The notes beneath the pieces are model-generated. The model ran no database searches, was not told the origin of the DNA, and saw only the letters and a program-made list of their open reading frames with translations. Shown piece after piece: positions 2,171 through 48,702 of a stretch of DNA of 64,000 bases (the first letter of the stretch is position 1; each line of letters opens with the position of its first letter). The stretch lies in the NCBI RefSeq assembly GCF_964204645.1, contig NC_134030.1:11987947-12051946 (forward strand). The letters are read 5' to 3'. The stretch comes from Tubulanus polymorphus. Taxonomy: Eukaryota > Animalia > Nemertea. Both the position numbers and the translations under genes were made by a program.

Positions 2171-2184
2171 AATATGTAAAATAA

Positions 2185-2943: not shown

Positions 2944-2959
2944 TTTTTTTGTTAAATAA

Positions 2960-3306: not shown

Positions 3307-3307
3307 A

Positions 3308-3529: not shown

Positions 3530-3553
3530 TTGCATAATATTTTTGCTAAATAA

Positions 3554-3976: not shown

Positions 3977-3994
3977 TAATTTTTTGCTAAATAA

Positions 3995-4429: not shown

Positions 4430-4445
4430 TTTTTTAGTTATATAA

Positions 4446-5731
4446 ATGGGGTTTCCAAAAGCTTTCCAATATAATAAATCAATTAAATATAATATTCCTG
4501 CATTAGATTTTAAAAAATATATTACATATAAAAATTTAGTTTTAAATTCATTAACTGATTTAGAAATTTATGCTACTGAATCACAGTGGAAAATATATTT
4601 AATACATATGAAGTTACTTTTACTCGAGATGAATATCATATATATAAAGTAAAATCTAATATGAAATATTGGCAGAATCAATTAAATTTTGCTGTTTATT
4701 GTGCAACAACTGGTTGTGGAATAAGTTGGAATGATCATTTAAATAACTTAGATAAAAATTTGAAGTATTCTGATTTAAAATTAATTCACACAATATTTAG
4801 ATTTCACACATATTTTCAAATCAGAATAATATTAAATGAATTAGAATGTCCTTTACCCGGATCTAAATATTTTAAAGAATTAGACAATAATATTAATCCA
4901 TCTAAGTTTTATAAAATATGTAATGAATTTAATATAAATATTAATTCCGATTTTAGAGCGCATGGTAAATTGCAAGGTGTTGGTGAAGAGTATGAAATAA
5001 AAAGAATTGATTATATGCATAGAATTGGAGCTTATCATAATTATAAAATTGATAATAATCATGGTTGGGTTAATTTCATTTTAGAAAATGGTGAAAGTTT
5101 CACAAAATCAGGTATACAAAGAATAAATCAATCTATTATAACTTATTTGATATGTATTTTAGGTGCGCAAGTTGAAACAAGATCACCAATTGTTGGAAAT
5201 GATAACACTTCATTCGATGCGCAGAAACAATTTAAAGTATTATTGAAGATTCCATTCATAATGATAAAAATAGATCGATTCCAGAAAACATTGTAAGATA
5301 TCAAAATTATTTAGATAAATCACATATTAGATTAAATTATTGTATAGGCCCTAATCTATTAATTAATTCTAATGATTTAGTATTAAAGATGGGAAATATA
5401 ATTGGTTATAATAATCTAATTAAAACTGCAACAAAAAATAATTCATTTGGATTAAATGATATAAATAAAAAGATTATCGCTGCTCCAAAATTAATGGAAG
5501 GTGAAAAAAATAAAAAACATATTCAATCAACAGAAACTAAAACTAAAAATATTAAATTTAATAATGATTCTAAAATAAAAGATTACAATACATCAGAAAA
5601 TATTAAAACTGATAATATTTCAACATGATATAATTAAAACTAATGATGATAATAAATCCCATGAAAATACTAAATTAGCTTTAACTTGTATAGGAATTGT
5701 AATCGGAGGAATATTATATTTTAAATTTTAA
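4446..5731 (+). pseudogene. conserved Polinton protein (YWQNQLNFAVYCATTGCGISW motif) with C-terminal TM, frameshifted
   Basis: ORFs 4446-4652, 4586-5296 and 5389-5628 join into one gene; homologs in B (11480-12527) and C (33774-34665). Confidence 0.7.
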
Positions 5732-5746
5732 TTTTTTATTATATAA

Positions 5747-7430: not shown

Positions 7431-7453
7431 AATTAATTTTTTTTGTTAAATAA

Positions 7454-8573
7454 ATGAGTGGGAGTTATATCAATCCTTCTAAGAATCATAGAATATCTAA
7501 TGCTATTAAAGCAGAAAGATCACATCATATAATTACTCATAACCCTTCTAATATTAATCCTGATGAAACTTTATATGTTAGAATCCCTCGATTAACACAA
7601 AATACTTTTTATGTTCCAAATAGTATTTATTTATCAGCCGATATAAAAGTAACCGGTAATAATAATAATTATGTTGTTGATAATGTTGGAAGATATTTGA
7701 TTAAAAAATTAACTATAAAGATTGGTCCAGAAACAGTTTTCTCATTAGATGATTATAATTTATTTATGCGTTATAAAGATTTATGGTTAACTAAAGAAAA
7801 TAGAAATAATATGATATTTCAAGGAATCCAATCAGAAAACCAAAATAAATTAAGATCAGAAGCACATAATGCAATATCAACTAATGCTATAGATAAATTG
7901 ATAACAAGTATATATGGAAGCAAATATAAAATTCCATTAGACTTTGAATTGATGAATAATAATGCACCTTTATATAAATACGCAATTCAAGAAGAACACA
8001 ATTCAAACTCAATACAATCAAGGATTTTCATTATTATATGATTATATTGATAAATTTAAAACTGTGACTATTAATGCAAATGATGAAATAATTAATGAGA
8101 ATATTAACTTCCCAAGAAGATCTATTAAAGGTATATTAATATTTTTTACCATTGCAACATATACTAATGGTGCAATAAATGTTGATAATTATTATAATCC
8201 TGAAATAACAAAAGTAGAAATAACTATCGAAGGAATAGCAAATAAAATATTTTGTCAAGGAATGAGAATGATTGATCAATGGCCAGAAATAAGAAGACAT
8301 TTTATGAATGAAAAAGTAAAATCATCTGAAAATTGTAATATTAATCAAATTGATTATTATACAGGTAATAAATATGCATTATGGTTAGATTTTAGAACAA
8401 CAGAGGATAATTCATTACATGGTTCTGGAAAAAAACTACAGAACAATAAAGATGGAATACAATTATTCATGACAAAGAATAAAGGAATCAAAAATTTTAA
8501 AATGCACATTTATATTATATCTGACGCGCAATTAAATATTGTAAATTCTGAATTAAATAGTGTTATGTATTAG
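7454..8573 (+). pseudogene. major capsid protein (double jelly-roll, hexon-like) with a frameshifting internal deletion near 7995
   Basis: Near-identical to the intact 415-aa ORF 31034-32281, but lacks the segment DIIFEITF...NENIAS. Confidence 0.75.
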
Positions 8574-8605
8574 AATTTTAACTTTAATAAAAAATGTTAT
8601 ATTAA

Positions 8606-9830
8606 ATGGAAGGTGGAATATATGAAATACAAACTCCAAGTGAAATGATATCAGATATATATTATATATTACCTTATGATAAATACAGTAAGTATTTTGG
8701 AGATAACTTTATTTAATTCAAATATAGAATAAGTAAAATAGATAAGAATATTGAAACTAAAATAGAAAATAATATTGGAACTAAAATAGAAGATAAGAAT
8801 GATATTGAATATAAAATAGAAGATGATATTGAATATAAAATAGAAGATAGTAATAATATTGAAACTAAAATAGAAGATGTAACAGCAGCTACATCTTAAA
8901 ATATACCCTCTACATATGATATTGAATCAAAAAAAGATTATTATAATCCAAAATATTGTGATGTATGTAAGAAATATATATCATATAAAAATTGGGCATC
9001 ACATAAGAAATCAAAGAAACATATAGAAAAAGAAAAGAATAATAATGATAATAATATATCAGTTAGTAATATAAAAGATAATGTTAATACAATTGAAACA
9101 AATGATACCATAGATAATATAACAGATAATGTAATAAATAATGTTAACCCAATTGAAACTAATGATAATGATATAACAGATAATGAAATAATTGATGATT
9201 CTAAAAAACATTGTAACATTTGTAATTTAGATATTTCTAAAAGTAATTTTTCTAAACATAAAAAATCTCAAGCGCATATGGAAAATGAAAGGAAGTTAGA
9301 AGAACATGAAAAGAAATTAGAAGAAATAGAAAGAAATAAAATGTGCCAATATTGTAATAAAAAAATTGAACCTGTTGATGAAAATACTCATTATAAATCA
9401 AAATTACATCTAATAAATGTTTATAAAATAATGGGTATGATACCATTGTTAAATAACCCAGAGAAATATATCAAATATTTTAATCCTAAAACTAACCAAT
9501 ATTATATATTCTATAAGTTGTTATTTGATAAATTATTAGCTTATGCAGAAGATAATCCTGAACAAATATATAAATTATTAAATTATTATATTTAGAAAAA
9601 TAGATTTAAGTTATCTGATAAATAATTTTAGAAATCATTTCGATTTTGATTATGATGATTTTGATGAATACTTAGAAAAATTAAGAGAAAAAGCTAATTT
9701 ACCTACTAATTATTATGTTAAGATGACTCGACTAAAATCAATAAATATACATAATACTTTAGATGAATTAGATATAAACAGAGATGAATTTATAAATGTA
9801 TTAGAAGCAAAATTAGAATAATTATTATAA
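8606..9830 (+). pseudogene. low-complexity protein(s) with U1/matrin-type C2H2 zinc fingers, fragmented
   Basis: CDVCKKYISYKNWASHKKSKKH, CNICNLDISKSNFSKHKKSQAH and CQYCNKKIEPVDENTHYKSKLH read in frame on +. Confidence 0.55.
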
Positions 9831-10147
9831 AACTAATTTATATATCAATGTACTAGACGTACGTAAGAATCTTGGTACGAATCCAAGAATCCAAGAAATC
9901 TTACTTTCTTACTCGTACGTCTAGTATATAGATATATAATTCAGTTTTTATAAAAATTAAAAACATAAAATTATTAATCTAAGTATAGAAATAGTTATAA
10001 TATAATCTATTTTTATTTTTATATAATTCATTTAATAATTTATATATCTATGTACTAGACGTACGTAACAATCTAAGAATTCTTACTTTCTTAGCAAGAG
10101 TCTTGGATTCTTACGTACGTCTAATACATAGGTATATAAATAGTTAT
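9826..10147. promoter_or_regulatory. pair of related long imperfect palindromes (9826-9952 and 10034-10147) at a convergent gene junction
   Basis: Four arms of about TATATATCWATGTACTAGACGTACGTAAGAA in alternating orientation; function not established. Confidence 0.6.
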
Positions 10148-10755
10148 TTTATAAATTTATATTCATAGGGAAATTGAAACCTAAGTAATAATTTTGAACC
10201 TTTATTATTCTTTAATTTATTAATATATTCATCATATAATTCAGTAGGTATAATATCATTTTCTTCCAATGATTGTTGCATAGATTTTTTAGATTTGTTA
10301 TAAAATAAAACTAGAAATCTTATATTAACCCTAAAGTCTTTAACAATTGAATTATATTTTTGATTTAAAACCCATGTTGTTATCCCAAAATGTCTCCCAG
10401 AGAAAGCTAAATAACATAACTCACTTTCTCTAACTTTTGAATCATGTAAATTTGTACAATCATCTATATTGAATAATGTATTTGATCCTTTATAAGTATC
10501 AATTGCTATTTTAATACAATTATCTAAATTTTCTTTTACTGTTTTAGGATCTAATATAATAAACTTTTTCATCTTAACTATATCTCTATTATATGTTTTA
10601 TTCATTTCATAAGTAGGACAAAATAATATTATATTATCAAAATGATTCTTATAAATAGTTTCTAACAAGTCTAATATGAAATGTGTTTTACCACAGTTGG
10701 TTGCCCCAGTTATTAACATATTATGTGGTTCAAATATAAATAAATCTTTATTCAT
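10144..10755 (-). CDS. A32/FtsK-HerA family DNA packaging ATPase
   Basis: Walker A GATNCGKT, Walker B IDD, A32-type SGRHFGITTWVLNQKY; intact ORF. Confidence 0.9.
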   Translation of the reverse strand: MNKDLFIFEPHNMLITGATNCGKTHFILDLLETIYKNHFDNIILFCPTYEMNKTYNRDIVKMKKFIILDPKTVKENLDNCIKIAIDTYKGSNTLFNIDDCTNLHDSKVRESELCYLAFSGRHFGITTWVLNQKYNSIVKDFRVNIRFLVLFYNKSKKSMQQSLEENDIIPTELYDEYINKLKNNKGSKLLLRFQFPYEYKFIK

Positions 10756-10759
10756 TTAT

Positions 10760-11480
10760 TCTTTTAATTTTACCAGATAAAATCCATTCATTAAATTTAT
10801 CATCATATCCTTTATATTTCACCAAAGAATACTTTTTTCCTTTAAGAGTTTTTGTTTTCAATACTTTTTCTATTTTGTATTCTATTTCATCTGGGTTTGG
10901 TACAAGTGATAATTCTTGTTCATAGAAATAACCTAATATTTCTTCATCTTTTAGATCTCCTAGTTTATAAACAAAAGGTTTAGTTAATATTATCTTTTAA
11001 ATCTTGAATATTTCTTCTGTAAAATTAGGGGTTTAACCTTTATAAAAGGTTTTTCTATATTTAGATATTCTAACGTGTTGTCCAATTTAAAATTTAGGTT
11101 CACCGAAATCATGTGTAACAAATGCGCCATATAAATTATTCCATACTATTTCTGAATTATCTTCTTTTCTAGCTTGTATAGGTTTCATTTTTATAGAACT
11201 ATGTTTAGAATTATTATAACCTTTCACTAAATCATCTAACACATCGATATATTTATGTGTTTCATTAGCAGTAAAAAATTTCCACATTCTAGTTTTCAAT
11301 GTTTTATTAAATCTTTCTATAATAGATGTTTTTTTATCTGAGTGTGTTGAAAAATAATCTACATCGTTATCAGATAATAGTTTTTTTGAAATGTTTGTTA
11401 TAAAATTCCTTACCTTCATCAAATATTGATTTAAAAGCATTTGTTACTTCTATACCAGTTTTATTTTTGATTGCTGGCAG
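10760..11480 (-). pseudogene. Polinton rve integrase with C-terminal chromodomain-like segment, 5'-truncated
   Basis: IIERFNKTLKTRMW...YNNSKHSSIKMKP; downstream YKIEKVLKTK...KGYDDKFNEW; several stops. Confidence 0.85.
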
Positions 11481-13624
11481 TAATCTTTTTATTTATACAA
11501 TTTAATCCAAATGAATTATTTATTGTTGCAGTTTTAATCAAATTATTATAACAAATTATATTTCCCATCTTTAATACTAAATCATTAGAAATAATTAATA
11601 AATTAGGGCCTATACAATAATTTAATCTAATATGGGATATATCTAAATAATTTTGATATCTTACAATGTTTTCTGGAATCGATCTATTTTTATCATTATG
11701 AATTGAATCTTCAAATAATACTTTAAATTGTTTCTGCGCATCAAATAAAGTATTATCATTCCCAACTATTGGGGATCTTGTTTTAACTTTTGATCCTTAA
11801 ATACAAATTAAATATATTCGAATAGATTGATTTATTCTTTGTATTCCAGACTTGGTAAAACCTTCACTATTTTCTAAAATAAAATAAACCCAACCATTGC
11901 CATTATCAATTTTATAATTATGATAAGCTGAAATTCTATGCATATAATCAATTCTCCTTATTTCATACTGTTCACCAATACCTTGCAATTTACCATGCGT
12001 TCTAAAATCGGAATTGATATTTATATTAAATTCATTACATAGCTTATAAAACTTAGATAGATTAATATTATTATCCAATTTTTTAAAATATTTCGATCCA
12101 GGTAAAGGACATTCTAATTCATTTAATATAATTCTGGTTTGAAAATACGTGTGAAATCTAAAGATTGCATGAACTAATTTTAAATAAGAATAATTCAAAT
12201 TTTTATCTAAATTATTAAGATGATTGTTCCAACTTATACCACATCCTGTTGTTACACAATAAACAGCAAAATGTAATTGATTCTGCCAATATTTCATATT
12301 AGATTTTATTTTATATACATTATATTCATCCCGAGTAAAAGTAACTTCATATGTATTAAATATATTTTCCATTCTAGAAATAAAGACTTTGTTTCAGTAA
12401 CATAAATTTCTAAATTAACTAATGAATTTAAAACTAAATTTTTATATGTGATATTTTTATTGAAATCTACTGCGGGAATATTATATTTAATTGGTTTATT
12501 ATATTGGAAAGCTTTTGGAAACCCCATTTATATAATAAAAGAAATTAATAATTAATTAGTTCTTTTAATAATTTATCTTGTTCTTCAACTGTTATATTAC
12601 CATTTAAACTAATAATATAATCTAATGTATTTTTTAATTTATTAATTTCCGGTTAAAAGACTTGAACTTAATCCTAGCACGCCAATTGATATAGGTGTTA
12701 ATTGTGAGAATATTGCTAAAAATGTTATTACAGAACTAATTTTAACGGAATCACTAATAATAAAGTAATATATAATTTTACTTTTTAAATATTTTTTCTT
12801 TTTATTTTTTAAAATCATTTTCAAATTCTAATATTTGTTTTTCCAAATATAATTTTAATTTAGTTTTACTGATATCATGAGGAATAATATCAATATTATC
12901 AACTTTATCATCCATTTATTTAACAAAAAATAATATATAATTAATTAGTAAATTTATATGCAACAAATACAACAACAACTGTTCCATCTAAAATCCAAAT
13001 TATTTCATACTTCTTCTGTTCATTACTTGGGGTATATTAATCCGATAATTTAGGTATATATAGATGTAATTTTTCTTTGTTACTGCGTTATATAAACTCA
13101 TTGCATCATCGACTGATTGAAAATCTCTATGTGAAATTTTCTGATCATATAATTCTTTGTTAATATAATCCATATAGTTTTGTCTCTTTTCTCTGTATTC
13201 TTCCGCTGCTTTATTATATTTTTCTAATGCTAAATTATGTCTTTTCTGTTCTGATAATGAAGCATTTTTATCAATATGCTTAAATAAATACCCACCACCT
13301 GTAAATGCTTAAGCGTTAACAATTGCCGATCCTATAATAGTTATAACTGCAGATGCCATTTATTTAATAAAAATCATGTGTTTATAGGAGGAATATATTT
13401 TTGTTTTCCAAATAATCAACTGTTAAATTAGATTAATAATCAACTGTTAAATTAGATAAAGTAACTGCTAACGTTAATTTTAAAACATAATTTATATCAA
13501 ATCTATCAACATTAATACTACCCATTCTGTATACTTTTTTTAATACCATTGTATAACCAACAGTTCCCACTGATAATAATGCTACATTATATAATCCAGT
13601 TATTATCCACTTATTATCACTCAT

Positions 13625-13966
13625 TTATTTATAAAAAAAAGCACCTTCTTCAAAATATTTAGTTATCTTATTTATGATTATTTCAACATTTATTTCATTA
13701 CTACCTTTATGATTATCATATATTTTGGATAATATATTTTTAATATCATCGATAATGCCATCTTCATTTAATTCATAATATTCTAAAGATGTTTTAATTA
13801 AATCAATTTCTTTTTCTATATTATAATTTTCTTTATTAATCATTGATGCATTATTAAATGATTTACTATTAATATCAGTAATTACATCATTTAGTTTAAT
13901 TCTCATTTCTTTAACATGTTTAAAATCAAACCCAAAACATATACTCGGTCCAACAGTTATATTCAT
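13625..13966 (-). CDS. small Polinton protein (113 aa)
   Basis: Intact ORF with TAAATG start; homolog in copy A. Confidence 0.55.
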   Translation of the reverse strand: MNITVGPSICFGFDFKHVKEMRIKLNDVITDINSKSFNNASMINKENYNIEKEIDLIKTSLEYYELNEDGIIDDIKNILSKIYDNHKGSNEINVEIIINKITKYFEEGAFFYK

Positions 13967-15113
13967 TTATATATCAAAAAAAATTACTCTACATCTTAAA
14001 CTAATTCATAAATTACAGGAAAGTTATTCAAATCAATTGAATATCCATTGTGATTTCTAATTTCTAATCTAAAGTTATTACATTGAGGAATGCATGGTTT
14101 GAAATCACACTCGGCTAAATTATAATTTATTTGTGTTCCAAATTCTTTAACATTCTTCAATGGTAAAATATTCAATAAACCAGAATTACATATTGTATCT
14201 TTAGTTGCTTCAAATGTCTTGGTAGGATCAATTAAATTGCAATAAATATAAAGATGCGTAAAAGGCATTATATTTGGTGTAGCATCAGCATTACGTATCC
14301 TTACATCTGAGTTTAGCTAAAGGTTTTTTAACTAGAAATTGTTGTTGATCTTCATTGCCTAATTTTATTCTAATTTTATCAGAGCTTTTAATAAGTCTTT
14401 ATCCAAATCCAGCAGATGCACCCATTTTTAAGCGTGCTCTTTTATTAATTTCTTGAGCTTATGTTTCTAAATTATATAATCCTGGTTTAAGATAAAGATG
14501 AAACCATCTATTTTTATTTCTATCATGAATTAAAAAGACAATATGTTCAATACTTTTATCCGATATATTATAAAATGAGTTACATAAACTAATATTTACT
14601 AATTTTAAATCAACACAATCTTTAAATTCTCTAATTGCACTAGTAAATTATGAGATTTATAATTTGTAAGTCTTCTAGAATCAACAAATATTCTGTATTC
14701 TTTTAATTCTACCATTTGTTTTACATATTTTTTATTCGAAATCTATATCATGGTGCCCTTTTTCATTCTTACCTGTGTATATAAAATAGAAATCACCAGA
14801 ACATAATTCTTCTAAATCTTCACTTGATAGTCTATGAAATCTATCTGGTTAAATGTTCTGAATTTATATTTATTTCCTTTTAATCCCTCATATTCTAAGT
14901 GAATAACTAATTTATCTCCATATTTGTTAGTAACTGTATCAATATTTGTAATTAGATATTTCTTGTGAATTGTTAATTCTGTTAACTTTTTGAATTTTTA
15001 ATCTTCTGATTTAGCATTTGTAGTATCTTTTATTCTAACAAAGAATGATTTGTTGTTCTCGCTGTGTACTTGTTTACTCTCCATTTTAATAACATATTTT
15101 TTATTAAAATTGA

Positions 15114-29933: not shown

Positions 29934-30097
29934 TAGCTAGTAACCCGAAAGCAAGACGATATCGACTAGACAAAAAAACAGTGATCATTAGCTAGGACTG
30001 CAATAAATCAAAATCATTAGCGGTAGAGCACACGCTTGGTAACAGCAAGAAAGTGTCTGAAATAAAGAAACTGATAGTTAGAAAAAATAACACTCAC

Positions 30098-31003
30098 CGG
30101 TTTTGTTGTTATAACCTTTTTTATTTTATATATTTCCCTAGTAAAATTTCGATCGTATCCTTTGTCAAATATCTTTTTATACTTAGATATTCTAACATTT
30201 TGGCCAACTTTAAATTTAGGTTCACCAAAATCATCTACAAGAAATGCTCCATATAAATTATTCCAAACAATTTCAGCATTTTCAGATTTTCTAGCATCAA
30301 TAGGTTTCATTCCAATAGAAGAATGATAAGAATTATTATATCCTTCTATCAATTTTGGTAAAATATCAATCCATTTAAAAGTATTATTTGCTGTAAAATA
30401 TTTCCACATTCTTGTTCTTAATGTTCTATTAAATCGTTCAACAACTGCTGCTTTTTTATCTGATTTTGTTGAAAAATATTTAATATTATGATTATCTAAG
30501 AGTTCATGAACAAGTGAATTATCAAACTCTTTTCCATCATCAAATTGTATTTTTTCTGGATTTAGTTTATCATCCGAAAGAAATTTTCTTAAAACATTTG
30601 ATGTTTGTACAGCATCTTTTCTATAAAGTGGGAAACTCCATACATAACGACTAAAAATATCAATTATATTCAATAACCACCAATAATCATCATTATCTTT
30701 CTTAACATTTTTCATATCAATTAAATCTCCTTGCCACTGTTGATCTACATAACTTACCATAGTTTTACGAGTTTTATATTTTCTAACAATTTTTTTATGT
30801 GTTGTATATGTTGGTTGTTCTAACATAAATTCATTTATATCTTTATATTTAACTAAATTTTGTGGGATTATCTTATCTAATTTATCTTGTTTTACTTTAC
30901 GCCATATATTTTTAGTAGAAGAATAAGCAACCGAACTCTCAGGGTTGTAATATAAATTTCTTAAATATTGTTCTTTAGTATTAGGAGTTTTTTTACCACT
31001 CAT
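30098..31003 (-). CDS. Polinton rve integrase, C-terminally truncated
   Basis: QWQGDLIDM, IIDIFSRY, QFDDGKEF, VVERFNRTL; integrase similarity ends at TTKP (30098). Confidence 0.9.
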
Positions 31004-31033
31004 TTATATATCCTTAATTTTAACTTTATATTT

Positions 31034-32281
31034 CTAATATTGAATACTATCTAATTGTGAATTTACAATATTTAATTGTGCGTCAGATATAATATAAATG
31101 TGCATTTTGAAATTTAAACTTCCTTTTTTCTTTTTCATAAATAATTGTATTCCATCTTTTGTATTCTGCAGCTTTTTCCCAGAACTATGTAATAAGTTAT
31201 CTTCAGTTGTTCTAAAATCTACCCATAATGCAAATTTATTACCGGTATAATAGTCAATTTGATTAATATTACAATTTTTAAATGATTTTATTTTTTCATT
31301 CATAAAATGTTTTTTAATTTCTACCCATTGAAATATCATTCTCATTCCTTGACAAAATATTTTATTTGCTATTCCTTCGATAGTTATTTCTACTTTTGTT
31401 ATTTCAGGATTATAATAATTGTCAACATTTATTGCACCATTAGTATACGTTCCAATGGTAAAAAATATTAATATACCTTTAATAGATCTTCTAGGGAAGT
31501 TAATATTCTCATTAATTATTTCATCATTTGCATTAATAGTTACAGTTTTAAATTTATCAATATAATCATATAATAATGAAAATCCTTGATTGTATTGAGT
31601 TTGAATTGTGCTAGCAATATTTTCATTAGTTATTGTGTTATATTCTAAACATATATTCGATAATTTATAACTCATATCTTTAACAACGCTAGATAATACA
31701 ATTTCATTTACAGGAGCAAATGTTATCTCAAATATAATATCTTCTTGAATTGCGTATTTATATAAAGGTGCATTATTATTTATCAATTCAAAGTCTAATG
31801 GAATTTTATATTTGCTTCCATAAATCTTTTTAATCAAATTGTCTGTGGCACGAGTTACTACTGCATTATTGGCTTCAGATCTTAATTTATTATGGTTTTC
31901 CGATTGGATGCCTTGAAATATCATATTATTTCTATTTTCTTTAGTTAACCATAAATCTTTATAATGCATAAATAAATTATAATCATCTAATGAGAAAACT
32001 GTTTCCGGACCAATCTTTATAGTTAATTTTTTAATTAAATATCTTCCAACATTATCAACAACATAATTGTTATCATGGCCAGTTACTTTTATATCGGCTG
32101 ATAAATAAATACTGTTTGGAACATAAAAAGTATTTTGTGTTAATCGAGGGATTCTAACGTATAAAGTTTCATCGGGATTAATATTTGAAGGGTTATGAGT
32201 AATTATATGATGTGATCTTTCTGCTTTAATAGCATTAGATATTCTATGATTCTTCGAAGGACTTATATAACTCCCACTCAT
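31034..32281 (-). CDS. major capsid protein (double jelly-roll), intact 415 aa
   Basis: Size, beta-rich pattern (KIPLDFEL, FPRRSIKGILIFF, LWVDFRT), position next to the integrase and strong conservation between copies. Confidence 0.75.
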   Translation of the reverse strand: MSGSYISPSKNHRISNAIKAERSHHIITHNPSNINPDETLYVRIPRLTQNTFYVPNSIYLSADIKVTGHDNNYVVDNVGRYLIKKLTIKIGPETVFSLDDYNLFMHYKDLWLTKENRNNMIFQGIQSENHNKLRSEANNAVVTRATDNLIKKIYGSKYKIPLDFELINNNAPLYKYAIQEDIIFEITFAPVNEIVLSSVVKDMSYKLSNICLEYNTITNENIASTIQTQYNQGFSLLYDYIDKFKTVTINANDEIINENINFPRRSIKGILIFFTIGTYTNGAINVDNYYNPEITKVEITIEGIANKIFCQGMRMIFQWVEIKKHFMNEKIKSFKNCNINQIDYYTGNKFALWVDFRTTEDNLLHSSGKKLQNTKDGIQLFMKKKKGSLNFKMHIYIISDAQLNIVNSQLDSIQY

Positions 32282-32325
32282 TTATTTAACAAAAAAATTA
32301 ATTATTTATTTTTTGATATCATGGT

Positions 32326-33756
32326 TTACTTGATATTTTTTGATATCATATTCACTAAACCAAAAATAATAGCACTTACAACTGTAATTAAAAATAAAAT
32401 AATATGTTCAGCAGCAAAGTTAATAATGTTTCCTGCAGATTTCAATATAAAACCAACAATTGATGCAATAACTCCTGGCAATGCTGAAGCAGATTTTTTA
32501 GATAGTTCCCATAAATATTTTGCTAATTTCTTTAAACCATCCTTAACTTTATCTTGTATAGAATTATTTCCTGGAGGTTTATCTGGTTTATTGGGAGTAG
32601 GAGTAGATTTTAAAGCATTTGATATTGCTAAACCAATTGTTGTAAATAACATAGTTACAGCTGTTAGAATTGAGAGAATTGTTATTCCTTCTAATTTAAA
32701 TAATAACTTCATCCTGTCTTTTAATGATATTTCAGAATTTGGTTTAATCAACAAATCTTTAAAAATAACTTTTAATCTATTAATATTATAATCATATGAT
32801 TTTAACAATAATTTAATTTCTTCTTTTTGTAATTCTATGTTATATTCTAAATCATCTTTTTCTTTTTCTAAACGTAATTCTTTTTGCCTATATTCTATTT
32901 CATCAATTACTTGATGATCTAAATCAGACTTTAATTGTTCTATTTCTTTATTTTTATCAGTTAATTCTTTTTCTAAAGTTCTAATTTTAAAATCTCTTAT
33001 ACTTTTATTATGTGCAATTTTATCAGATGCAAGTCTTATACTAATAATTTCTCTAATTGCTTTATCAGAAAATATATCTAAATCTTCTAATTCTTGATCT
33101 GTTGCATCAAGTAATCCATTCGGTAAAAGTTTTTCAATTGGAACTTTATTTGATTTAAGTTTACTATTTTTGGAAGTTATATTCTGTTCAGAAGTTGTTT
33201 CTGTTTCTGATTTCTTTTTGATTATTTCAAATAATTCATTAATTCTTTGTTTAAATACATCTATATCATTATCAGTTAATTCTTGTTTTATAACATCAGT
33301 TATTTCATTACTATTACTTATTATTTTAATTCTATCTGGATCTAATTTTCTCAAAGTTGATTTCGCTATTATTTTATTTCTATAAGTGATATCAATATAA
33401 TAATCACCTTTCAAACGATAATAACATTTACCATTATCTAAAAATTTTAATTGATCTGCTAAAAGTCCAACGTCTTTATCATTTATGTTAAAATTAGATT
33501 TTTCAATTAAATCTTCTAATTTAGGTATTTTGTTTAAATTATCTAAATCTTGTTTTACTAAATCTGGGTCTAAATTTTCAGGATTTAATTGTGATTCAGC
33601 ATTTTTAATATAATCAGGCATATTCAAATTATTATTATATTCTGGTTCATTACCATCATTAAAACTTGTTTCATCAAAATCATGTGGTTGTTCATCAGTT
33701 ATGTTAGGTTCATCAAAAGGATCCATTCCAATATCTTCTACACCTTCTACATCCAT
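32326..33756 (-). CDS. coiled-coil protein with two C-terminal hydrophobic regions (476 aa)
   Basis: Intact ORF with TAAATG start; homolog in copy A. Confidence 0.7.
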   Translation of the reverse strand: MDVEGVEDIGMDPFDEPNITDEQPHDFDETSFNDGNEPEYNNNLNMPDYIKNAESQLNPENLDPDLVKQDLDNLNKIPKLEDLIEKSNFNINDKDVGLLADQLKFLDNGKCYYRLKGDYYIDITYRNKIIAKSTLRKLDPDRIKIISNSNEITDVIKQELTDNDIDVFKQRINELFEIIKKKSETETTSEQNITSKNSKLKSNKVPIEKLLPNGLLDATDQELEDLDIFSDKAIREIISIRLASDKIAHNKSIRDFKIRTLEKELTDKNKEIEQLKSDLDHQVIDEIEYRQKELRLEKEKDDLEYNIELQKEEIKLLLKSYDYNINRLKVIFKDLLIKPNSEISLKDRMKLLFKLEGITILSILTAVTMLFTTIGLAISNALKSTPTPNKPDKPPGNNSIQDKVKDGLKKLAKYLWELSKKSASALPGVIASIVGFILKSAGNIINFAAEHIILFLITVVSAIIFGLVNMISKNIK

Positions 33757-33773
33757 TTATATAATAAAAAAAA

Positions 33774-34665
33774 TTAAAATTTAAAATATAATATTCCTCC
33801 TATAACAATTCCTATACAAGTTATAGGTAATTTAGTATTTTCATGGAATTTATTATTATTATCAGTTTTAATTATATCATGTTGAATATTATCAGTTTTA
33901 ATATCACTGTGTGGGTGCCGTACGGCACCATTTTCTGTAGTATTGTAATCTTTTATTTTGGAATCATTACCCAATTTAATATTCTTAGTTTTAGTTTCTG
34001 TTGATTGAATATGTTTTTTATTTTTTTCACCTTCCATTAATTTTGGAGCAGTTATAATCTTTTTATTTATATCATTTAATCCAAATGAATTATTTATTGT
34101 TGCAGTTTTAATTAGATTATTATAACCAATTATGTTTCCCATCTTTAATACTAAATCATTAGAAATAATTAATAGATTAGGACCTATACAATAATTAAGT
34201 CTTACATGAGATTTATCTAAATAATTTTGATATCTTATAATGTTTTCTGGAATCGATCTATTTTTATCATTATGTATGGAATCTTCAAATAAAACTTTGA
34301 ATTGTTTCTGCGCATCGAATGAAGTGTTATCATTTCCAATTATTTGGGATCTTGTTTCAACTTGCGCACCTAAAATACATATCAAATAAATTCTAATAGA
34401 TTGATTTATTCTTTGTATACCTGATTTTGTAAAACCTTCACCATTTTCTAAAATGAAATTAACCCAACCATTATTATTATCAATTTTATAATTATGATAA
34501 GCTCCAATTCTATGCATATAATCAATTCTTTTTATTTCATACTGTTCACCAACACCTTGCAATTTACCATGCGCTCTAAAATCGGAATTAATATTTATAT
34601 TAAATTCATTACATATTTTATAAAACTTGGATATATTAATATTATTATCCAATTCTTTAAAATAT
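33774..34665 (-). pseudogene. C-terminal part of the YWQNQL-motif Polinton gene
   Basis: Near-identical to ~4870-5731; the 5' part was removed by a deletion. Confidence 0.75.
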
Positions 34666-35914
34666 AATGTTCATTTTAATCTTTTTTGTAATATAACAAA
34701 TCTATAGCATTTTCATCATCATAATATTCTGTTGAATATAAAGCTTCCAATGTATAATCTTTAATATTTTCACCTTTTGTCTTTGGTAATTGCATTAATT
34801 CAAATACATTTATTTTTAAATTATTAATTTTTTCTATTTTAGGAATCATTTTTATAGTTACTGGATATTGATCAATTTTATATAATGTTTCATATTTCCG
34901 ATAATCTGTTATTCTACAAACATTTTCCTGTGTTGGATGTAAGCAACTAATAATTGACCATAGAAAACATTTATTATCTTCATTTTGAATATTTATTACT
35001 GCTTTTGTTGTAAACGGTAATTTGATATAACTTGATGCTTTCATATCTTTTTCTGTTATAAAGTTTGAATCATTTTTAAACATTTTATTACTTTTTGATG
35101 TTTTATTCCTTTTTGTATTATAAACATTTAAATCTAAATATATAATTTCGTTCAATGTTAAGCCAGAACCCTCAAAATATCTTTCTTCAATATGACGTTT
35201 AAATTCATTTAATATTTTTTCTAACTTCTCTTTTATTTGTGTTTTTGAAATTATTTCTTCAGAGAGTGTTTGAATATTATAATCCATTTTTTCTTCTGAC
35301 TTTATAAAACTTACTTTCCCAGAGATACTAATTTTTGGATATTCAACATCTGTTATCAAATCTAGTATTTTTTCTATTATTTCATTAAATTTACTATAAT
35401 CTTCTATTGTTGTACCTTTAAAAAATCTAAATATAATAGCTGCAGGACCAATTTTACTATGTAATGTTTCTAAAATTTCAATTGTATCTTTTATTTCTAG
35501 TGAATCAATATAATTTCTAACATTTTCCATGTAAGGTTTATTTGAAATGGATTTAGTTTTTGAAGTTGATTCTTTTACTTGTTGAGGTTTATTATCAAAA
35601 TATTCTAATCCTAAAACATTTTTATTTAAATTTTTATAATGTTTTTGTGATTCGAGATGTCTATTATAATTCCTTTTTACTATAAATTCATTACAAACTT
35701 CACATTTTATTTCATCCACATTCATATTTTCTAATCGTTCTTTTCTTTCATTGGAATTTTCTGGAGTTTCAAAATCTATAACATTTTTTATATGATTTGA
35801 AGATTTTTCATGTTTAGATTTATTAGATTTATCGATGTATTTTTTACAATATTGACAATAATATTGATTTTTATTGACATTATTGTTTTCTAGTTGGTGT
35901 TCATTCTCCCCCAT
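34666..35914 (-). pseudogene. pPolB N-terminal region (zinc fingers plus terminal-protein-like domain), truncated
   Basis: Two C2H2 fingers, then EGSGLTL and SSYIKLP...INIQNEDNKCFLWSI...LHP, typical of the Polinton pPolB N-terminus. Confidence 0.75.
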
Positions 35915-35999
35915 TTATTAGGAAAAAAAATTACTTGTGGTGATGAGTGGTGTCTCGTACTCTCGTACTCTGATCTGAAACCCCACTTTTCTAATTACT

Positions 36000-37100
36000 G
36001 ATATGCTAGTATTTCATCACGTAGGTTAGCATAGATCCTCACAGGTTCTACTATCACATGACATATAAACAATACTTACAAAAATGTCTTCCTCTAAATG
36101 GAAAAAATGTTTACATAGCTTTACCCACATTATATCTGGGTGATAACTTTCAACTAATTTTAATCCTTGTTTTAGTGCAGACGGGTAAAGGAAAAGTAAT
36201 CCTCCGGAATTTCTGCGTGCTTTTCTACGAACACTTTGAAAAAACGAGTATCCATTCGGGGTTGGAAATACAGTATGTTTGCTACTCCAAGTCTCGCATA
36301 GCAAACTAAATGATTTCTCACCTGTCAGATTCTGTATCTCTGGTAATTCCAGTTTTAATATCATTTTGTCCGCTATTATTTCCCGCGTATGCCTATTCGG
36401 TGTTAATTCCTCCCGGTTGATTCAAACTCGCATGCACCTGGTGTAGTACATCATTCACATTCGGGTGACCGCTATCAGCTTCATCACTGTGACGCTCGGG
36501 TGGACTTATACGCGTTGAGTTCAGGCTTGGGACATGATCACGATGTCCGGTTTTATTTTCAGGATATTTCACATCAGACGCGCGTTCTCTGTGTTGTGAA
36601 CTGGGGACGGCCCTCTGCAGACGAGTTGGTTGTCTATCATGACTGGGATGTTCATCATCGTTCCCTGTATCACCAGTGTATAACCTGTTGTTCACATACA
36701 ATTTATCGCGCACAAATTGGAATTTTTGGAACTGGCCGATGCGATGTGCGCGTGCAGATCTTATGCGCCTACGGGCGTCTGTATTCTTTACATTTCTCTC
36801 AAGCACATCGTGCACTCTTGAAGCTGGATCTTCGCCTTTTGTCTCGGGTATATCGAAAAACAGCAGATTATCTCTCATTGATCTCATTTGCAGATCCAGG
36901 ACGGTATCCTTTAAGAGCATATTTTCATGTTTATTGATACTACATTGGCAAAAATATCTTCATAGAAACGCGCGTGGCCACCGGTTGAGTCAAGCGCAAA
37001 GCGCACGCGAGTGGTTGACCGTCGATTTTCTGCATGCGCAGATTACGCTATTTTCATGGCAATTTTCTAAAAAGAACAAAACTAACACAACACAAAAATA
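36000..37100 (-). mobile_element. LINE 5' part: ORF1 remnant (36393-36920) and APE endonuclease N-terminus (36026-36364)
   Basis: ORF1 motif LQMRSMRDNLLFFDIPE; APE motifs LCETW, RNSGG, IMWVKL. Confidence 0.78.
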
Positions 37101-41954: not shown

Positions 41955-43258
41955 TAAAACGGAATTATCATAGTCATCCAACACCCTTACAACCATTACC
42001 AATTGAAGGCTTATTCTCCAGATGGCACATTGACTTCCTTTGCAATCTTCCGGAGACACCTGATGGTAATAAGCATATTCTACTCGTGGTAGATAGCCGG
42101 AGTAAATGGCCCGAGGCTTTTCCTCTCAAAACTCAGGAAACAACAGAGGTAGCAAAGGTTCTCTTTAAAGAGATATTTTCGCGGTATGGTGCTCCTCATT
42201 CTTTAGTCTCTGATCGCGGTAAAACATTTATGTCTAAGTTAGTTGCAGCTCTCTGTGAATTGTTTCACGTGAAACAACATTTCACCGCTCCGTACCATCC
42301 TCAATCAAACTCAGTTTGCGAAAGAACTAACCAGTACATTTGGCAGTCGCTTAGGTCGTATTGTAACTAGGATCAGACTAATTGGGATACACTAATGCCA
42401 AGTGTAATGATGAGTTATAGGCATGTTCCCTCAACTGAAGGTTCAGGTTTTAGCCCTTACCACATGTTATTTGGTCAAGAAATGCGTCTACCAATAGACA
42501 CGGCTTTAATTCCACGGCATTCGTTAGCTACTGATCATAAGGCATACTTATCACATATATTAAGGCAGCTGGTCATATCACGAAATATCGCTAACGAGAA
42601 TATTAAAAGAGCTCAAAATGAGTATAAAACTCAGTTCGATAAAAAGGCATTAAAACCTCAGTTTCAGATTACTGATCGCGTTTGGCTAAAAGTCATGAAA
42701 GTTAAGAAAGGAAAATCACCAAAACTGTGTAAAAAATACGTAGGTCCCTATTTCATTCAGTCAATAGCTAGTAAAGGGGCTTATCAATTACGAAAAATCT
42801 CTGATAACGTTTTACTCCCATCGCATGTCAATGGGAACCGTCTTAAGTTATACAAAGATCCCTCATCGCGTCCAAATTATGAAGAGGTCGCATGGGATGG
42901 TTCAACAGCTGAGGAAAACCCTGAATTATTCGACGAGATTCATGGGCGCTTAAAATATAAACCTAGCAATTTAGCTGATACTCCAACTGACACTCAAATT
43001 TCGGCTGACGATAACAAAGATAGACCGGTAGTTACTGAGACTTTCAATGAAACAGATATTCAGAAAATTCTACAGTACAAACTAGAAAGTGGTTTATGTA
43101 AATATCGCGTAAAATGGAAGTCAGATTTAAATCGTGGAAATTCTTGGGAATTAGGAAAATGGATCCCAAATAAACTAATTCGACACTTTCACGAAAACTA
43201 TGCGGCATCAGGCAAAAAACGTAAGAAACCTTGCAAAAGTGGCTCAAGTCCATTATAG
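41955..43258 (+). pseudogene. Gypsy integrase core, GPY motif and chromodomain; in-frame stop at 42368-42370
   Basis: WHIDF, SDRGKTF, YHPQSNSVCER, YVGPYFI, YRVKWK...SWE. Confidence 0.88.
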
Positions 43259-43727
43259 CATTAAATAGTTCCAGCAGAGACTTATTACATCGGACTGGTA
43301 TTTGAAATTAATCCGCCAATATCGGACATATTGAATCTTATATTACGCACGAATACGACATAACGCTATACGGACAAACCAACATACCGACAAACCGACA
43401 AACCGACATACCGACAAACCGACAAACCGACAAACCGACATATCGACATTGGCATTTAACAAAAGAGAAATATTATTACGGAACTTATTATTAATAGCAA
43501 TAACATACTGAATGCTTGGCGGATTATGTATCTTTGGGTTTCACACGTTTAAAAGTTTTTCCAGTTATTTCATCGTATAAATGCTTTTAATATAAGTCTA
43601 TGAATTGCAACGATTATAAATGATATCGGCCATAATATCGACGACGAGCGACCACCCATAATTGGTTATCAAATCATGGGATAATCTTCAGATACTTTAA
43701 GACGGGTTTACGGTTACTTGATGAGGT

Positions 43728-46700
43728 TCAAGATTCATCCGACTCATCCGTGTCGTCGACCTGCGTTAACATTTCTTCAAACGCCTCTATTTCTGGATGA
43801 TGAATTCGACAAGTGGTTTTCATGGCCTCGGACATACTACTCGTATCATTAAACTTTGCCCGATATACGTCTAAAGTTGTGTCTGTGCATTTGAACAGAC
43901 TGTCTTTTTCGAAAAGTGCGTCTGGCAATTTCTTGAAGAAAAATAGTGTTGATCTTCCAGCTCCTGCTTGTTTTAGTGTTTTCAAGTGACCCAGGTTTTT
44001 CCTGCTCAGCTCCTGCAGACTTACTGGAATAAGAGAGACGAAGTATATCAAATACATGTGCATGTGATGGCTTTTGTTGAATTTGCATTCCATTACATAT
44101 AAGCCAGCCAATTAAAGAATATTCTTTTAGGCCTTTTTTAATGTTATAGAAATTATCCTTTTTTATCGGACGAGTTTAGCCGATTGTTCATTCGTTCGTT
44201 CGTTCTTTAAATTGATACTATAGAAACCAACGTAGTATTATTAACAATCCTTACAGTTTCAACCGAAATTGGTAAAATAAGAATGGTGAATTTCGTAGCA
44301 TGTCCCGGTCTATTGGAAATTTCTCCACTTTTTCATGATTGTAAAAAAGCAATTGATTTTCTGCTAGATCATGAAGTTCTTTAATCAGCAAATGATTGTG
44401 ATGTGTGCATTAAACCAATGTTATTAGTACCAAGAACATCAATTACTGATGGATTTATTTGGTTGTGTAATGAATGTGGCTGCAATCGGTCTATCCGAAC
44501 TGGAAGCATCTTTGAGGTAATATTGTTGTTTTTTCAACGTTATGATTTTGGGACGTGTGTATTAGCGTGTATTACACTTTATAACATTATAGAGATCGAG
44601 GAGCCGAGTGTGCCCGTGTATTACACTTATATAAAGTGGCTGAGATCGAGGGGCTTTGAGGTGCGTGGATTACCCTTATATAAAGTGGCTGGGATCGAGG
44701 GGCTGTGTGTGTGCGTGGATTACCCTTATATAAAGTGGCTGAGATCGAGGGGCTGGGTGTGTGCGTGGATTACACTTATATAAAGTGGCTGAGATCGAGG
44801 GGCCGGGTGTGTGCGTGGATTACCCTTATATAAAGTGGCTGAGATCGAGGGGCTTGGTGTGTGCGTGGATTACCCTTATATAAAGTGGCTGGGATCGAGG
44901 GGCTGTGAGGTGCGTGGATTACCCTTATATAAAGTTGCTGAGATCGAGGGGCTGTGAAGTGTGGCTGAGATCGAGGGCTGTGTGTGTGCGTGGATTACCC
45001 TTATATAAAGTGGCTGGGATCGAGGGGCTGTGTGTGTGCGTGGATTACCCTTATATAAAGTGGCTGGGGTCGAGGGGCTGTGTGTGTGCGTGGATTACCC
45101 TTATATAAAGTGGCTGAGATCGAGAAGCCGGGTGTGCCGTGTATTACACTTATATAAAGTGGCTGAGATCGAGGGGCCGGGTGTGCCCGTGAATTAGGCT
45201 GCATTATAAAATATTTTTTCATAATTTCTACAGGGATCCAAACTGTCGTTGTGCTCTGCTCTGTTGATCGTGTACGGATTTGCAATTGATCTACAGATTT
45301 ATCAAGTGCAGAAATTGGAACCTAATTTGAACGTGAAGACCATCATGAAATGGTATGACAGGTTGCGTGAAGTTTGTAGCGATTTTCTAAGGCGTAACCC
45401 TGTCATCATAAAAGGTGATGTCGCAGAATCAATTTCAGAAATTGATGAATCACTTTTCGGAAAAAGACGCAAATATAACAAAGGAAGCGGAAAACAGGAC
45501 ACATGGGTTTTTGGAATCTTTGAACGTGGTACACGGAATGTTGTAATGTCAATTGTGAACCGTAGAAATCGTGAAACTTTATTGCCGATTATAAAGAAGC
45601 ACGTTGCAAGTGGCTGCACAATTTATTCAGATGGTTGGTCGGCATATTCGGCGTTAAATGAAACGTATAACCATGGTGTTGTTAATCATTCCAAAGAGTT
45701 CAAATCTGTCGAAAATGTTTGCACGAATGGCATTGAAGGTATGTGGGGTATGATGAAAGGTAGGATCAAGAAAATGAAGGGCGTTGTCCACCAAAGAATT
45801 GGAATCTATATTGATGAATTTGTGTATAGGTATAGATTTGGACACTCAAATGGAGACATTTTTTGGGCATTTTTCCGTCATATAGGGCAACTAAAAAGAA
45901 TGGAAAAATTGAGTCGGCCTAACTTACATTGAACATTTGAAGCTGTGACTGCTCGTCCGCTGAGATTTTTCTGGATCATACGGAGAGTAACCAGTGGCCC
46001 AGGGGAATGAATGACAACTCTCCAGACTTTTTCGTCGAAACTCTTTATTGATTTATTCATTCTGACGGTTTTTGTGTCATTTCTTGAAAAGCTTTTAACG
46101 GCCTAAAATGATCAAATAATCATAAATGTGTTCATATTTTCATTAATTAGCAGTTAAATAAATGTTACCAGGTTATATTGTACTATATTTGTATGTTTAA
46201 TAGAAAATATATTTTCATTTACCTGTAAAATCACATCTTTTTGTTGAACAATTACATGATATAACGTTTTGGCGGCGATGACGGATTCTAATCCAATCGT
46301 CTTATTGAATCGGAATTCATTTTCTTTGTCCGTTAAAAAGTGATGTAGGTATTGACTTTGGATACTTAAGATGGCTGCAATCCTTAGAATATGCATAGCA
46401 TCTTTTGAACTTACGAGACTCGTTTCTTCAATATTTTCATCTGGAACAAACATGATTTTTGAGTGCAATTGAAGGCACGAACCCGTGTTTTAATATTGGT
46501 TATTTTGAAATAGCAACTGAGACTTGAAATCCTGAGTTAAATTTTTTGTGAATTCTGTCATTATGCAAACTGAATTTAAACGAACATATAGTGGTAAATT
46601 AGATATAAACTTTCTTTATCAATGATTTTCTTTAACTTTCTACTTGAAGAGGTTTTAGGATACATACCGTCACTCGAGTCTGAATCGTACATTCGGTTCA

Positions 46701-47571
46701 TATACATTACGAATTCGTCACGAATTTTGTTAAACGCGGTTGTTGCCTCTAGTGAAAGTTTTAAAACCGTTTCCTTAGATTTGAAATCATTGTAAATTGC
46801 CTCGAATATAGGAATGAAGCTTTCTAATCCTGATTGTGACAACAGTTTATAATTGTCTTTACAAACGCTCGATGGTTGGATCATTGGTTTTGAGACGAGG
46901 AACAAGAACCTATCCCAGAATCCGTCACCACATTGCTGACTTGCACCGTTAATCATTTCCCTAAACATGGGTTCTGGTTGAATGAAGACAAGCATAGATA
47001 TTGCTGTTTTTTCGAACCCTCTGGTTCCTGTTGACAATGTTGATGCATCGCCATGTCCACCCCATACTTTATTAAGGAAACTCCTTTCTGATTCGCCATT
47101 GCGTTGTTTCGTATTAATTTCGGCCATCAGCTTCGCACCTTCATCCTCGCTTATCAAGCCATACCCACGGTTTTCTTTTTGATGGTTTTGTATTCCAGCG
47201 GAGGTGTATTTACCGATCAACAATGATTTACCACTTTTTGTTGCATAAACCCTATCGGCTGGTATTACGATCTCATCAAATGCTCGCGATTTACCTCCTC
47301 CACACTCGCAAAGACATGCAATAAACGTGTTCAGGGTTGATGTAAAATCGCCGTCTTCCGTTTCAGCTACACATCCAGGCCCTATCAGACTTGCTGTTAT
47401 TGGTAGCAATGCCCCAACTAAAAGATCGAGTGGACAGTTTTTTACCCTTGAGTAGATCCTTAACCATTCTAGTTCCTGTTCGTTGACAATTTCTGCCCAT
47501 GGTACTTTAATTTTCCATGCTTTTTTATATATTTTAGCAATATCGGAGCTGCATAGAATAGATCTCGACAT
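43728..47571 (-). CDS. DUF3987/YfjI-like P-loop ATPase with C-terminal winged-helix-like region; 4 exons (47571-46668, 46440-46223, 46102-45928, 44023-43728), 530 aa
   Basis: Walker A CGGGKS, Walker B ISEDEG, FIQP, DGFWDRFLF, KDAMHILRIAAIL. All three introns are GT..AG with matching phases 1/0/1; the summed exons (1593 nt) give one uninterrupted frame. Confidence 0.8.
44283..45932 (+). pseudogene. Merlin/ISXO2-like DDE transposase; 2 exons (44283-44516, 45234-45932), 310 codons, one in-frame TAA at 44382
   Basis: Zn ribbon CDVC..CNEC; the splice joins SIRTGSIFE|GSKLSL; catalytic EIDES, IYSDGW, TNGIEGMW. Confidence 0.88.
44560..45192. repeat. 50-bp minisatellite inside the transposase intron (~12 units)
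   Basis: Unit TGGATTACCCTTATATAAAGTGGCTGGGATCGAGGGGCTGTGTGTGTGCG. Confidence 0.93.
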
Positions 47572-48702
47572 CTTGGCAATTATCTTTGATCTGACTTAAC
47601 AGTTTAATCAGTTTAATTACGAATTCAATTAAGATATGTATCCATAGTAACACTAATTACAGTGGCTAAAAGAAACTATGGACGCAGTGTTTGTTCTATA
47701 ACAATAGAATTTTCGGTATCAAACGAATGACACTGTAGGTAATGAAATCAATTCGCAAATTCTTATTATATTTTCATCATTTAAATATAATGATGTTATT
47801 GGATTAAGTAAAACATGTCATCGATTAATTTGTTACAGAAATACAAGTAGAAACCATTAACAAACAAACATGGGGACCCAAACATGGTTACAAACATTAC
47901 ATTTAGTTTAATGAGAAGAGATATGACACAAGAGGAATTTGCAGTACCAACTGAGCCACAACATTTCCAACAAACTTGAAATCTATTAATCAATTTATTG
48001 TTTTAATGTGTGCAATATAATAAGTCTAATACAATAAGAGCATCGCAAGACGCGTGAAACCCAAAGATACATAATCCACCGAGCATTCAGTATGTTATTG
48101 CTATTAATAATAAGTTCCGTAATAATATTACTTTTTTTATTAATGCCAATGTCGGTTTATCGGTATGTCGGTATGTCGGTTTGTCGGTATGTCGGTATGT
48201 CGGTTTGTCGGTATGTCGGTTTGTCTTGAAAAGTATGCAGCCGAATTACTCCCTTTAAAAAAATGTATCTTTGAGCGGGGAACTATTCCACGCTATACTG
48301 GACTTGAACCGCAGAGGTAAGTTTTTTTATCGCATTACAGACAATTCTGATAATAATCAGGGACATCAAAACGATCGAAATGAAAACGAGAATGACGTAG
48401 CAAATATTATAATCACAAATAGAGATAGATGTCAGGATAGTGAAGTAGAGATACGTGAAAAACCTAGAAGAACATTAAATGGAACCGTAATACAGGGTGT
48501 ATATGTTACTAATGATCGCTTACAGGAATTTGATAATCAGATGTCTAATGAAGACTCATCAAATAATGAGAATGTAAATAGAGTATATTGTTCAGCTCGA
48601 TCGAAAACTCACCAAGATCATACGAATCAGGGCTCAACTCCAGAACAGGTAAAAGTAGATCTGCCCAGGCTGAGTACATAGCACGTATTCTTCCGCGAGC
48701 CA

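Follow-up and report, generated by a model that had tools for sequence, protein, structure and literature searches.

Two genes that lie one inside the other, on opposite strands, in the genome of the nemertean Tubulanus polymorphus raise the question of whether they travel together as one transposon or were brought together by chance. Both lie in a 64,000-nucleotide stretch of contig NC_134030.1 (NCBI RefSeq assembly GCF_964204645.1, forward strand, positions 11,987,947 to 12,051,946; here called the window, a piece on C6 of the 268-Mb assembly), and they encode, respectively, a DUF3987-like ATPase and a transposase of the Merlin superfamily. A first inspection of the letters by themselves (the sequence-only reading) had proposed that the two form an integrated module of transposase plus ATPase or helicase. 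Analysis of related copies, homologues and modelled structures partly confirmed what had been observed at the locus and partly supported that interpretation. The locus is a real two-gene variant of the Merlin superfamily in which the window copy has decayed, and the interval 43241-48310 is very probably a non-autonomous copy of a lineage that combines an IS1595-type transposase with a spliced MCM-like helicase.

Where the element begins and ends bears directly on the question. Similarity to a sister copy on C10 (L013) and to miniature inverted-repeat transposable elements (MITEs) of the same family set the limits at 43241 and 48310, a span of 5070 bp (Table 1). The sequence-only reading had bounded the element at 43373 and 48225 by a 176-bp inverted pair, which it took for the only terminal inverted repeats. 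That pair exists, with arms that are 91% complementary and an outer half composed of an 8-bp repeat array, but it is subterminal, because similarity, terminal repeats and target duplications all reach 43241 and 48310. At each true end of the window copy lies an imperfect terminal inverted repeat some 32 bp long, and the flanking 8-bp target duplication is perfect in L013 and matches at 6/8 positions in the window. MITEs of 0.9-1.2 kb bear exactly the two ends of the window element; among six whose target duplications were examined, four had perfect 8-bp duplications and one a 7/8 match. Genome-wide there were 155 such termini, compared with 0 for a reversed control pattern, corresponding to roughly 75 elements of which only four bear genes. 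These four copies keep a single order inside the same ends, namely helicase exon 4, the transposase gene and then helicase exons 3, 2 and 1.

Table 1. Features of the two-gene element; positions are counted from the first letter of the window.
Feature	Position	Strand	Evidence or remark
Left flank, candidate 8-bp target site duplication GCAAAAGT	43233-43240		6/8 match to right flank GCAGAGGT
Left terminal inverted repeat, true end, starts GGCTCAAGTCC	43241-43272	+	Similarity to L013 and MITEs begins exactly there
Subterminal 176-bp repeat, left arm	43373-43548		Includes an 8-bp unit repeated 9.5 times (43373-43448)
Helicase exon 4: second half of winged helix, C-terminal helices, stop	43728-44023	-	Homologue C-terminal domain, E ~1e-9
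Helicase intron 3, 1904 nt, GT..AG, houses the transposase gene	44024-45927	-	AG acceptor 44024-44025
Transposase exon 1, 78 codons, CxxC...CxxC zinc-ribbon-like, in-frame TAA 44382-44384	44283-44516	+	Translation
Transposase intron, 717 nt, GT..AG, filled by 50-bp tandem array (44592-45196)	44517-45233	+	
Transposase exon 2, DDE_Tnp_IS1595; TGA overlaps helicase exon 3	45234-45932	+	PF12762, E=2.6e-28
Helicase exon 3: linker and first half of winged helix	45928-46102	-	Alignment to homologues
Helicase exon 2: AAA+ lid helices	46223-46440	-	Alignment to homologues
Helicase exon 1, coding for N-terminal helices plus an AAA+ core that bears Walker A, Walker B, a hairpin and an arginine-finger motif	46668-47571	-	Pfam PF13148, E=5e-19
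Subterminal 176-bp repeat, right arm	48050-48225		8-bp repeats at 48149-48225
Right terminal inverted repeat, true end, minus strand reads GGTTCAAGTCC	48279-48310	-	Shared with genome-wide termini
Right flank, candidate target site duplication GCAGAGGT	48311-48318		6/8 match to left flank GCAAAAGT

The larger gene occupies the minus strand. As had been read from the sequence, four minus-strand open reading frames join in phase through three GT..AG introns to give 1590 coding nucleotides, or 530 codons; the introns measure 227, 120 and 1904 nt and all have pyrimidine tracts. Searching each exon separately upheld the DUF3987-like call, since exon 1 scored 69 bits against PF13148 (cut-off 27), and the same exon matched the PHROG "DNA helicase" family (E=3e-10). 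The motifs GGGKS, SEDEG and DGFWDRF are all in exon 1. The exon peptides tile in order on P0007, an intronless 515-residue homologue from a metagenome, with exon 1 on residues 10-300, exon 3 on residues 373-421 and exon 4 on residues 431-515, and the 72-residue exon 2 fits a 72-residue gap there, where it has no detectable similarity. On the Mytilus RefSeq protein P0157, the end of exon 2 and the start of exon 3 fall at adjacent residues, and mapping of RefSeq models to DNA placed introns in the Mytilus gene at all three positions of the window gene. A counterpart of intron 3 is also present in a second family of the T. polymorphus genome (the L017 family, described below), and sequence comparison suggests that this family shares the second intron too. 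Because an intron occupies the same position in Mytilus and the L017 family, intron 3 predates the nesting, and the transposase gene therefore moved into an intron that already existed.

What kind of ATPase this gene encodes was addressed with the homologue P0007, whose structural model, built from an alignment of 27 relatives, had a mean predicted local distance difference test score (pLDDT) of 85.5. The top 50 Foldseek matches of this model in PDB were all MCM subunits, and a second aligner, VIA, placed 270-280 residues on the MCM AAA+ domain (Z 15.5, root-mean-square deviation 4.5 Å). The final 131 residues of P0007, modelled on their own (pLDDT 88.8), returned winged helices for all of its top 50 matches, including SelB, MarR/SarA, Z-alpha and Cdc6/Orc1, with modest Z scores of 5.6-6.9. 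Exons 3 and 4 of the window gene align to this domain with their junction inside it, in agreement with the proposal that a winged helix is built across the last junction. Thus, the fold expected from the sequence, AAA+ plus a winged helix-turn-helix, was recovered on the homologue as an MCM-type AAA+ core followed by a winged helix.

Conservation of individual residues pointed in the same direction. Across the 27 relatives, full or almost full conservation was seen for the lysine of Walker A, the glutamate of Walker B, the glutamine that follows the hairpin and the arginine of the DRF motif (E, Q, G and R invariant, K nearly invariant), and the Walker A and B, Q and R residues conserved in the family are all present in the window protein. 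Homologues of the helicase matched PF13148 with E values of 1e-20 to 1e-28. Based on these models, the partner is predicted to be an MCM-like AAA+ helicase of the DUF3987 group (superfamily 6, SF6) with a C-terminal winged helix. Searches of other collections returned little: profiles of solved structures in PDB gave weak HerA P-loop matches only, tblastn against phage genomes gave no match to the helicase, and a profile word-index search matched only five metagenome proteins.

Several bacterial DDE transposases work with AAA+ partners, namely MuB, TnsC and IstB, and the sequence-only reading had placed the ATPase in their company. A protein of this kind would form an ATP-dependent oligomer on DNA, capture or mark the target and activate the transposase, all without unwinding. 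Such a role would suit an AAA+ gene that is kept beside a DDE transposase gene in one element through several arrangements, as well as the modelled winged-helix domain, which would bind DNA; it would also fit action in trans, since MITEs spread, and the bacterial precedents of a transposase with an AAA+ partner. However, the protein had no Pfam match to models of MuB, IstB or TnsC, its best fold matches were all MCM, and the kinship that had been suggested was thus not borne out. In addition, no partner of this type is known for the IS1595/Merlin group, and AgaPH, the one characterized DUF3987 protein, is a true helicase that is oligomeric, ATP-dependent and of 5'-3' polarity (PMC11724360). 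We consider a MuB-like role, whether on target DNA or in control of the transpososome, rather unlikely, and the MCM-like helicase described above is the assignment used in what follows.

The second gene, on the plus strand, is a Merlin transposase in both its domain and its catalytic residues. Exon 2 scored 99 bits against PF12762 (cut-off 27), and its translation contains the three catalytic motifs, with D in EIDES, D in YSDGW and E in NGIEG. The CxxC...CxxC pattern is visible in exon 1, for which the sole Pfam match was a weak one to DUF4428, with zinc-ribbon models below threshold. The junction of the two exons is collinear and gap-free with the intronless 349-residue transposase of L017. 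The gene lies inside helicase intron 3 and antisense to the helicase, and its TGA (45930-45932) overlaps the final bases of helicase exon 3, both as first described. The transposase had also been taken as whole, which does not hold for the window copy, where TAA stands at codon 34. This codon is TAT in L013 and in contigs of the read sets X2 and X3, which come from another sample. In L013 the transposase is open over 310 codons and helicase exon 1 is frameshifted, whereas in L014 and L015 both genes are broken.

These features bear on the simplest account of the nesting, in which a single-gene Merlin inserted into an intron of a DUF3987 gene, belonging to the host or of foreign origin, and the outer repeats are there by coincidence. 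The placing of the transposase wholly within an intron and the occurrence of single-gene Merlins in the genome would both be expected from such an event. Nevertheless, no inner inverted repeats or target duplications were found to flank the nested transposase, and its stop codon overlaps helicase exon 3. Moreover, in all four gene-bearing copies the 5-kb unit has moved as a whole, bounded by the same outer ends, and one copy has a perfect 8-bp duplication; intron 3 is older than the nesting; and the same pair of genes recurs at other loci. The shared ends, the overlap of stop codon and exon 3, the lack of inner repeats around the transposase and the return of the pair at other loci all contradict a plain Merlin that landed in a host intron, and we regard such an event as extremely improbable.

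Recurrence of the pair was most clearly seen in a second family in the same genome, with an element of 4714 bp (at L017:1423-6136 in its first member). Identity among the four copies of this family, L017 (C7), L018 (C4), L021 (C6) and L022 (C9), is 99.4-99.9%, and a separate perfect 8-bp duplication flanks each of them, which indicates that the family was active very recently. Both genes lie head-to-head within one pair of ends, and L022 is an internal-deletion copy that lacks the transposase. The transposase of this family also occurs (97% identical) at L045, where no helicase was found within 5.8 kb.

Further families in the genome encode helicases 35-45% and transposases 35-50% identical to those of the window, arranged head-to-head in L019 and L020 and in tandem in L051 (C12). 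Overall, a Merlin transposase match was present within 10 kb at 14/26 helicase loci, where chance would give about 0.3% per locus. The nearest relative in the genome, L016, has a helicase 44% identical to that of the window and a nearby transposase 62-69% identical. L016 was considered as a second nested family and ruled out, as the adjoining transposase fragment is head-to-head; the downstream transposase at this locus may belong to another element. The pair also occurs outside T. polymorphus. At a Mytilus edulis locus, a gene for a 513-residue DUF3987 protein lies head-to-head with one for a 289-residue DDE_Tnp_IS1595 protein, with 138 bp between them, and a 5.4-kb metagenome scaffold carries helicase and transposase genes in tandem. 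Three metagenome contigs (L037-L039) start too near the start of the helicase gene and fell outside the comparison of upstream transposases.

Together, these comparisons support one part of the proposed two-gene module and not another. That the genes form one mobile unit is supported by the shared ends and duplications in two families, and the pair recurs at other loci and in another species; nesting as the defining layout is not supported, as the relatives are mostly head-to-head or in tandem and the nested arrangement was not found elsewhere. In the window family, the transposase gene lies antisense inside the old third intron of the helicase gene. The window locus thus contributes a distinct family, an example of nesting in a conserved intron, the true ends and a large MITE progeny. 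Pfam searches and a scan of open reading frames in the window found no further conserved reading frame or domain inside the element.

How the pair came to be distributed in this way was examined with the transposase tree. Monophyly of the helicase-linked transposases was rejected, as two-gene and single-gene Merlins are interleaved and at least three changes are forced; both deep clades include two-gene members. The simplest reading of this tree would be an old pairing followed by repeated loss, although repeated gain may be an alternative. The same pattern is relevant to the possibility that the helicase gene is cargo with a role outside transposition, as a selfish rider, as a counter to silencing or defence, or as a gene en route to domestication. 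In favor of cargo are the many Merlin loci without a helicase, the interleaving itself, and distant homologues (~20-25% identical) in Nematostella, Exaiptasia and Pinctada, which had no transposase within 6 kb at the loci examined. Yet families with only 35-45% identity still have both genes, as do members of two phyla; the catalytic motifs are conserved, and the pairing has outlasted three gene arrangements (nested, head-to-head and tandem). Persistence of this kind argues for selection on the pair, and we judge the cargo explanation improbable.

One of the distant homologues has an unusual setting. The Nematostella vectensis gene at L027 (P0108) is DUF3987-like, has long introns and lies antisense within a PELP1-like gene; a Merlin transposase is absent within 6 kb of it. 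Domestication could account for this relative, or it may be borne by another kind of element.

Several observations weigh against the view of the locus as a two-gene Merlin lineage with an MCM-like helicase that serves transposition. The fold evidence comes from P0007, which is 35% identical to the window protein over exon 1. No PriCT or primase domain was found in the window helicase, and no primase or polymerase in the element. None of the four gene-bearing copies of the window family (0/4) has both genes intact, and the small number of changes that separate the window copy from L013 are for the most part non-synonymous, as would be expected for dead copies drifting after insertion. A helicase is nearby at only 15/44 Merlin transposase loci, several of which are plain single-gene Merlins, and MITEs, which lack both genes, outnumber the other members of the family. 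Because single-gene Merlins and gene-less MITEs also spread, the helicase is not required for mobility in itself. Trees of the helicase and of the transposase are compatible and mostly unresolved, and do not demonstrate co-divergence. Finally, the support for the splice junctions as given here comes from homology, and no RNA run that covered the stretch was found. Read sets on the stretch, of unrecorded run type, covered introns and exons alike with zero spliced joints and are therefore probably DNA, and one possible RNA run had nothing on the stretch.

In a two-gene Merlin, the IS1595-type DDE transposase cuts and joins the ends and in so doing makes the 8-bp target duplications; the ends and duplications observed correspond to DDE integration of the Merlin/IS1016 type (PMC10045372). 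We propose that the helicase would be an accessory protein, not needed for the transposition chemistry itself. The proteins act in trans, because gene-less MITEs form the bulk of the family. The helicase could open the duplex at the element itself, or at a gap or intermediate that the element leaves, and work without the licensed MCM loading of the host. Unwinding of this type could couple DNA synthesis to transposition, whether by copy-out, by replicative transposition or by a repair-coupled gain of copies. We put forward this coupling of DNA synthesis or unwinding to transposition tentatively, at a little less than even chances, and prefer it because characterized DUF3987 relatives are true replicative helicases. 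Since the pair has been kept through three arrangements and in two phyla with its motifs intact, the helicase probably raises the success of the element. A bolder proposal is that these are the first eukaryotic DDE transposons with an MCM-like helicase of their own, which would load without origin licensing and drive replicative transposition, by copy-out or by replication of an intermediate that is excised or nicked, with the 8-bp and 50-bp repeats as loading sites; taken as a whole, we think this unlikely to be correct.

Comparison with published systems showed how far this lineage departs from what has been described. A eukaryote-wide survey of Merlin reported only single-gene elements, together with one chance antisense reading frame (PMC8101967), in keeping with the view that eukaryotic Merlins typically have one gene, and a bivalve survey gave a mean Merlin length of 1.6 kb (PMC10294476). 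Merlin and IS1016 both generate 8-bp duplications (PMC10045372). The window lineage resembles Merlin in its DDE_Tnp_IS1595 domain, its N-terminal CxxC...CxxC, termini that begin with GG, 8-bp duplications and many MITEs, but differs from the short, single-gene elements described in its length of 4.7-5.1 kb and its conserved helicase gene. The second gene is a point of difference and no ground for exclusion from the Merlin superfamily.

DUF3987 proteins are described as replicative helicases of superfamily 6, related to MCM, with a C-terminal winged helix and usually with primase partners (PMC4889955). The literature we found on them concerned only bacteria, archaea and their viruses and mobile elements, which agrees with the earlier statement that these domains are known mainly from prokaryotic mobile elements. 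Like AgaPH and other members of this group, the window helicase has a Pfam match above cut-off, Walker A and B motifs, an arginine finger, an MCM-like fold and a winged helix, and it resides in a mobile element. Unlike the DUF3987 proteins of phages, plasmids and integrated elements, it is found in an animal, is spliced with conserved introns and is partnered with a transposase instead of a primase or PrimPol. With MuB, TnsC, TniB and IstB it shares the coding of an AAA+ ATPase with a DDE transposase in one element and probable action in trans; it differs in belonging to the MCM-like AAA+ clade, in its eukaryotic host and in a transposase that is not of the Mu, Tn7 or IS21 type.

The nearest eukaryotic precedent in concept is AcademH (Kojima 2020, cited in PMC10045372), an Academ lineage that encodes a helicase. 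It resembles the window lineage in being a eukaryotic DDE transposon lineage with a helicase in addition to the transposase function. It differs in its transposase superfamily, which is Academ and not Merlin, and the AcademH helicase is reportedly of a different class from the MCM-like one. No paper that linked Merlin or IS1595 elements to DUF3987 or to any helicase was found in a search of the literature, with Repbase and Dfam outside that search.

Merlin has been regarded as one of the simplest superfamilies of eukaryotic DNA transposons, with one gene and short ends. The finding of a helicase kept beside the transposase in three arrangements and in at least two animal phyla suggests that some animal elements of the cut-and-paste type depend on, or profit from, a DNA-unwinding motor of their own. 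In the recently active L017 family the genes are naturally intact, which makes it a workable system in which to ask whether DNA synthesis directed by the element, or the handling of targets, can be linked to DDE transposition in eukaryotes. These elements also show that a family of replication helicases of prokaryotic or viral type lives as spliced genes in animal genomes, and they bear on annotation, as such genes are labelled as host proteins and the MITEs and 50-bp arrays of the window family are abundant repeats.

Naming in public records illustrates the point about annotation. Three DUF3987 transposon proteins of Mytilus edulis (P0003, P0155 and P0162) are recorded as "RAD54" or "RAD54L". 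The sole recorded Pfam match of P0003 is DUF3987, as it is for P0157 of Mytilus galloprovincialis, so that the RAD54 name is unsupported. In a 370-kb metagenome contig, the predicted protein P0098 has 1709 residues with helicase-core matches in ten separate stretches, and may represent either tandem repetition of a gene fragment or an array that was called wrongly.

The 50-bp array in the transposase intron reached a read depth of up to ~100,000, compared with ~100 for the genes, and the element termini were ~50x deeper than the interior in the read sets. Its copy number differs among copies of the element, with about 50 units in L014, and contigs from the read sets join the array straight to subterminal repeats, as in MITEs. 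The array may be a satellite seeded by the window family or an array that binds protein.

Outside the element, a 287-codon open reading frame at 42395-43258 has weak matches to an SH3 domain of Tf2 type and to a chromodomain, resembling the C-terminus of a Ty3/gypsy-like integrase. This reading frame enters the left Merlin end, which places the Merlin insertion at the 3' terminus of a retrotransposon pol gene. Elsewhere, positions 1-15000 and 30001-36000 of the window are long blocks of 21-25% G+C, compared with 35-47% in the rest, with strong strand skews whose sign changes near 10 kb.

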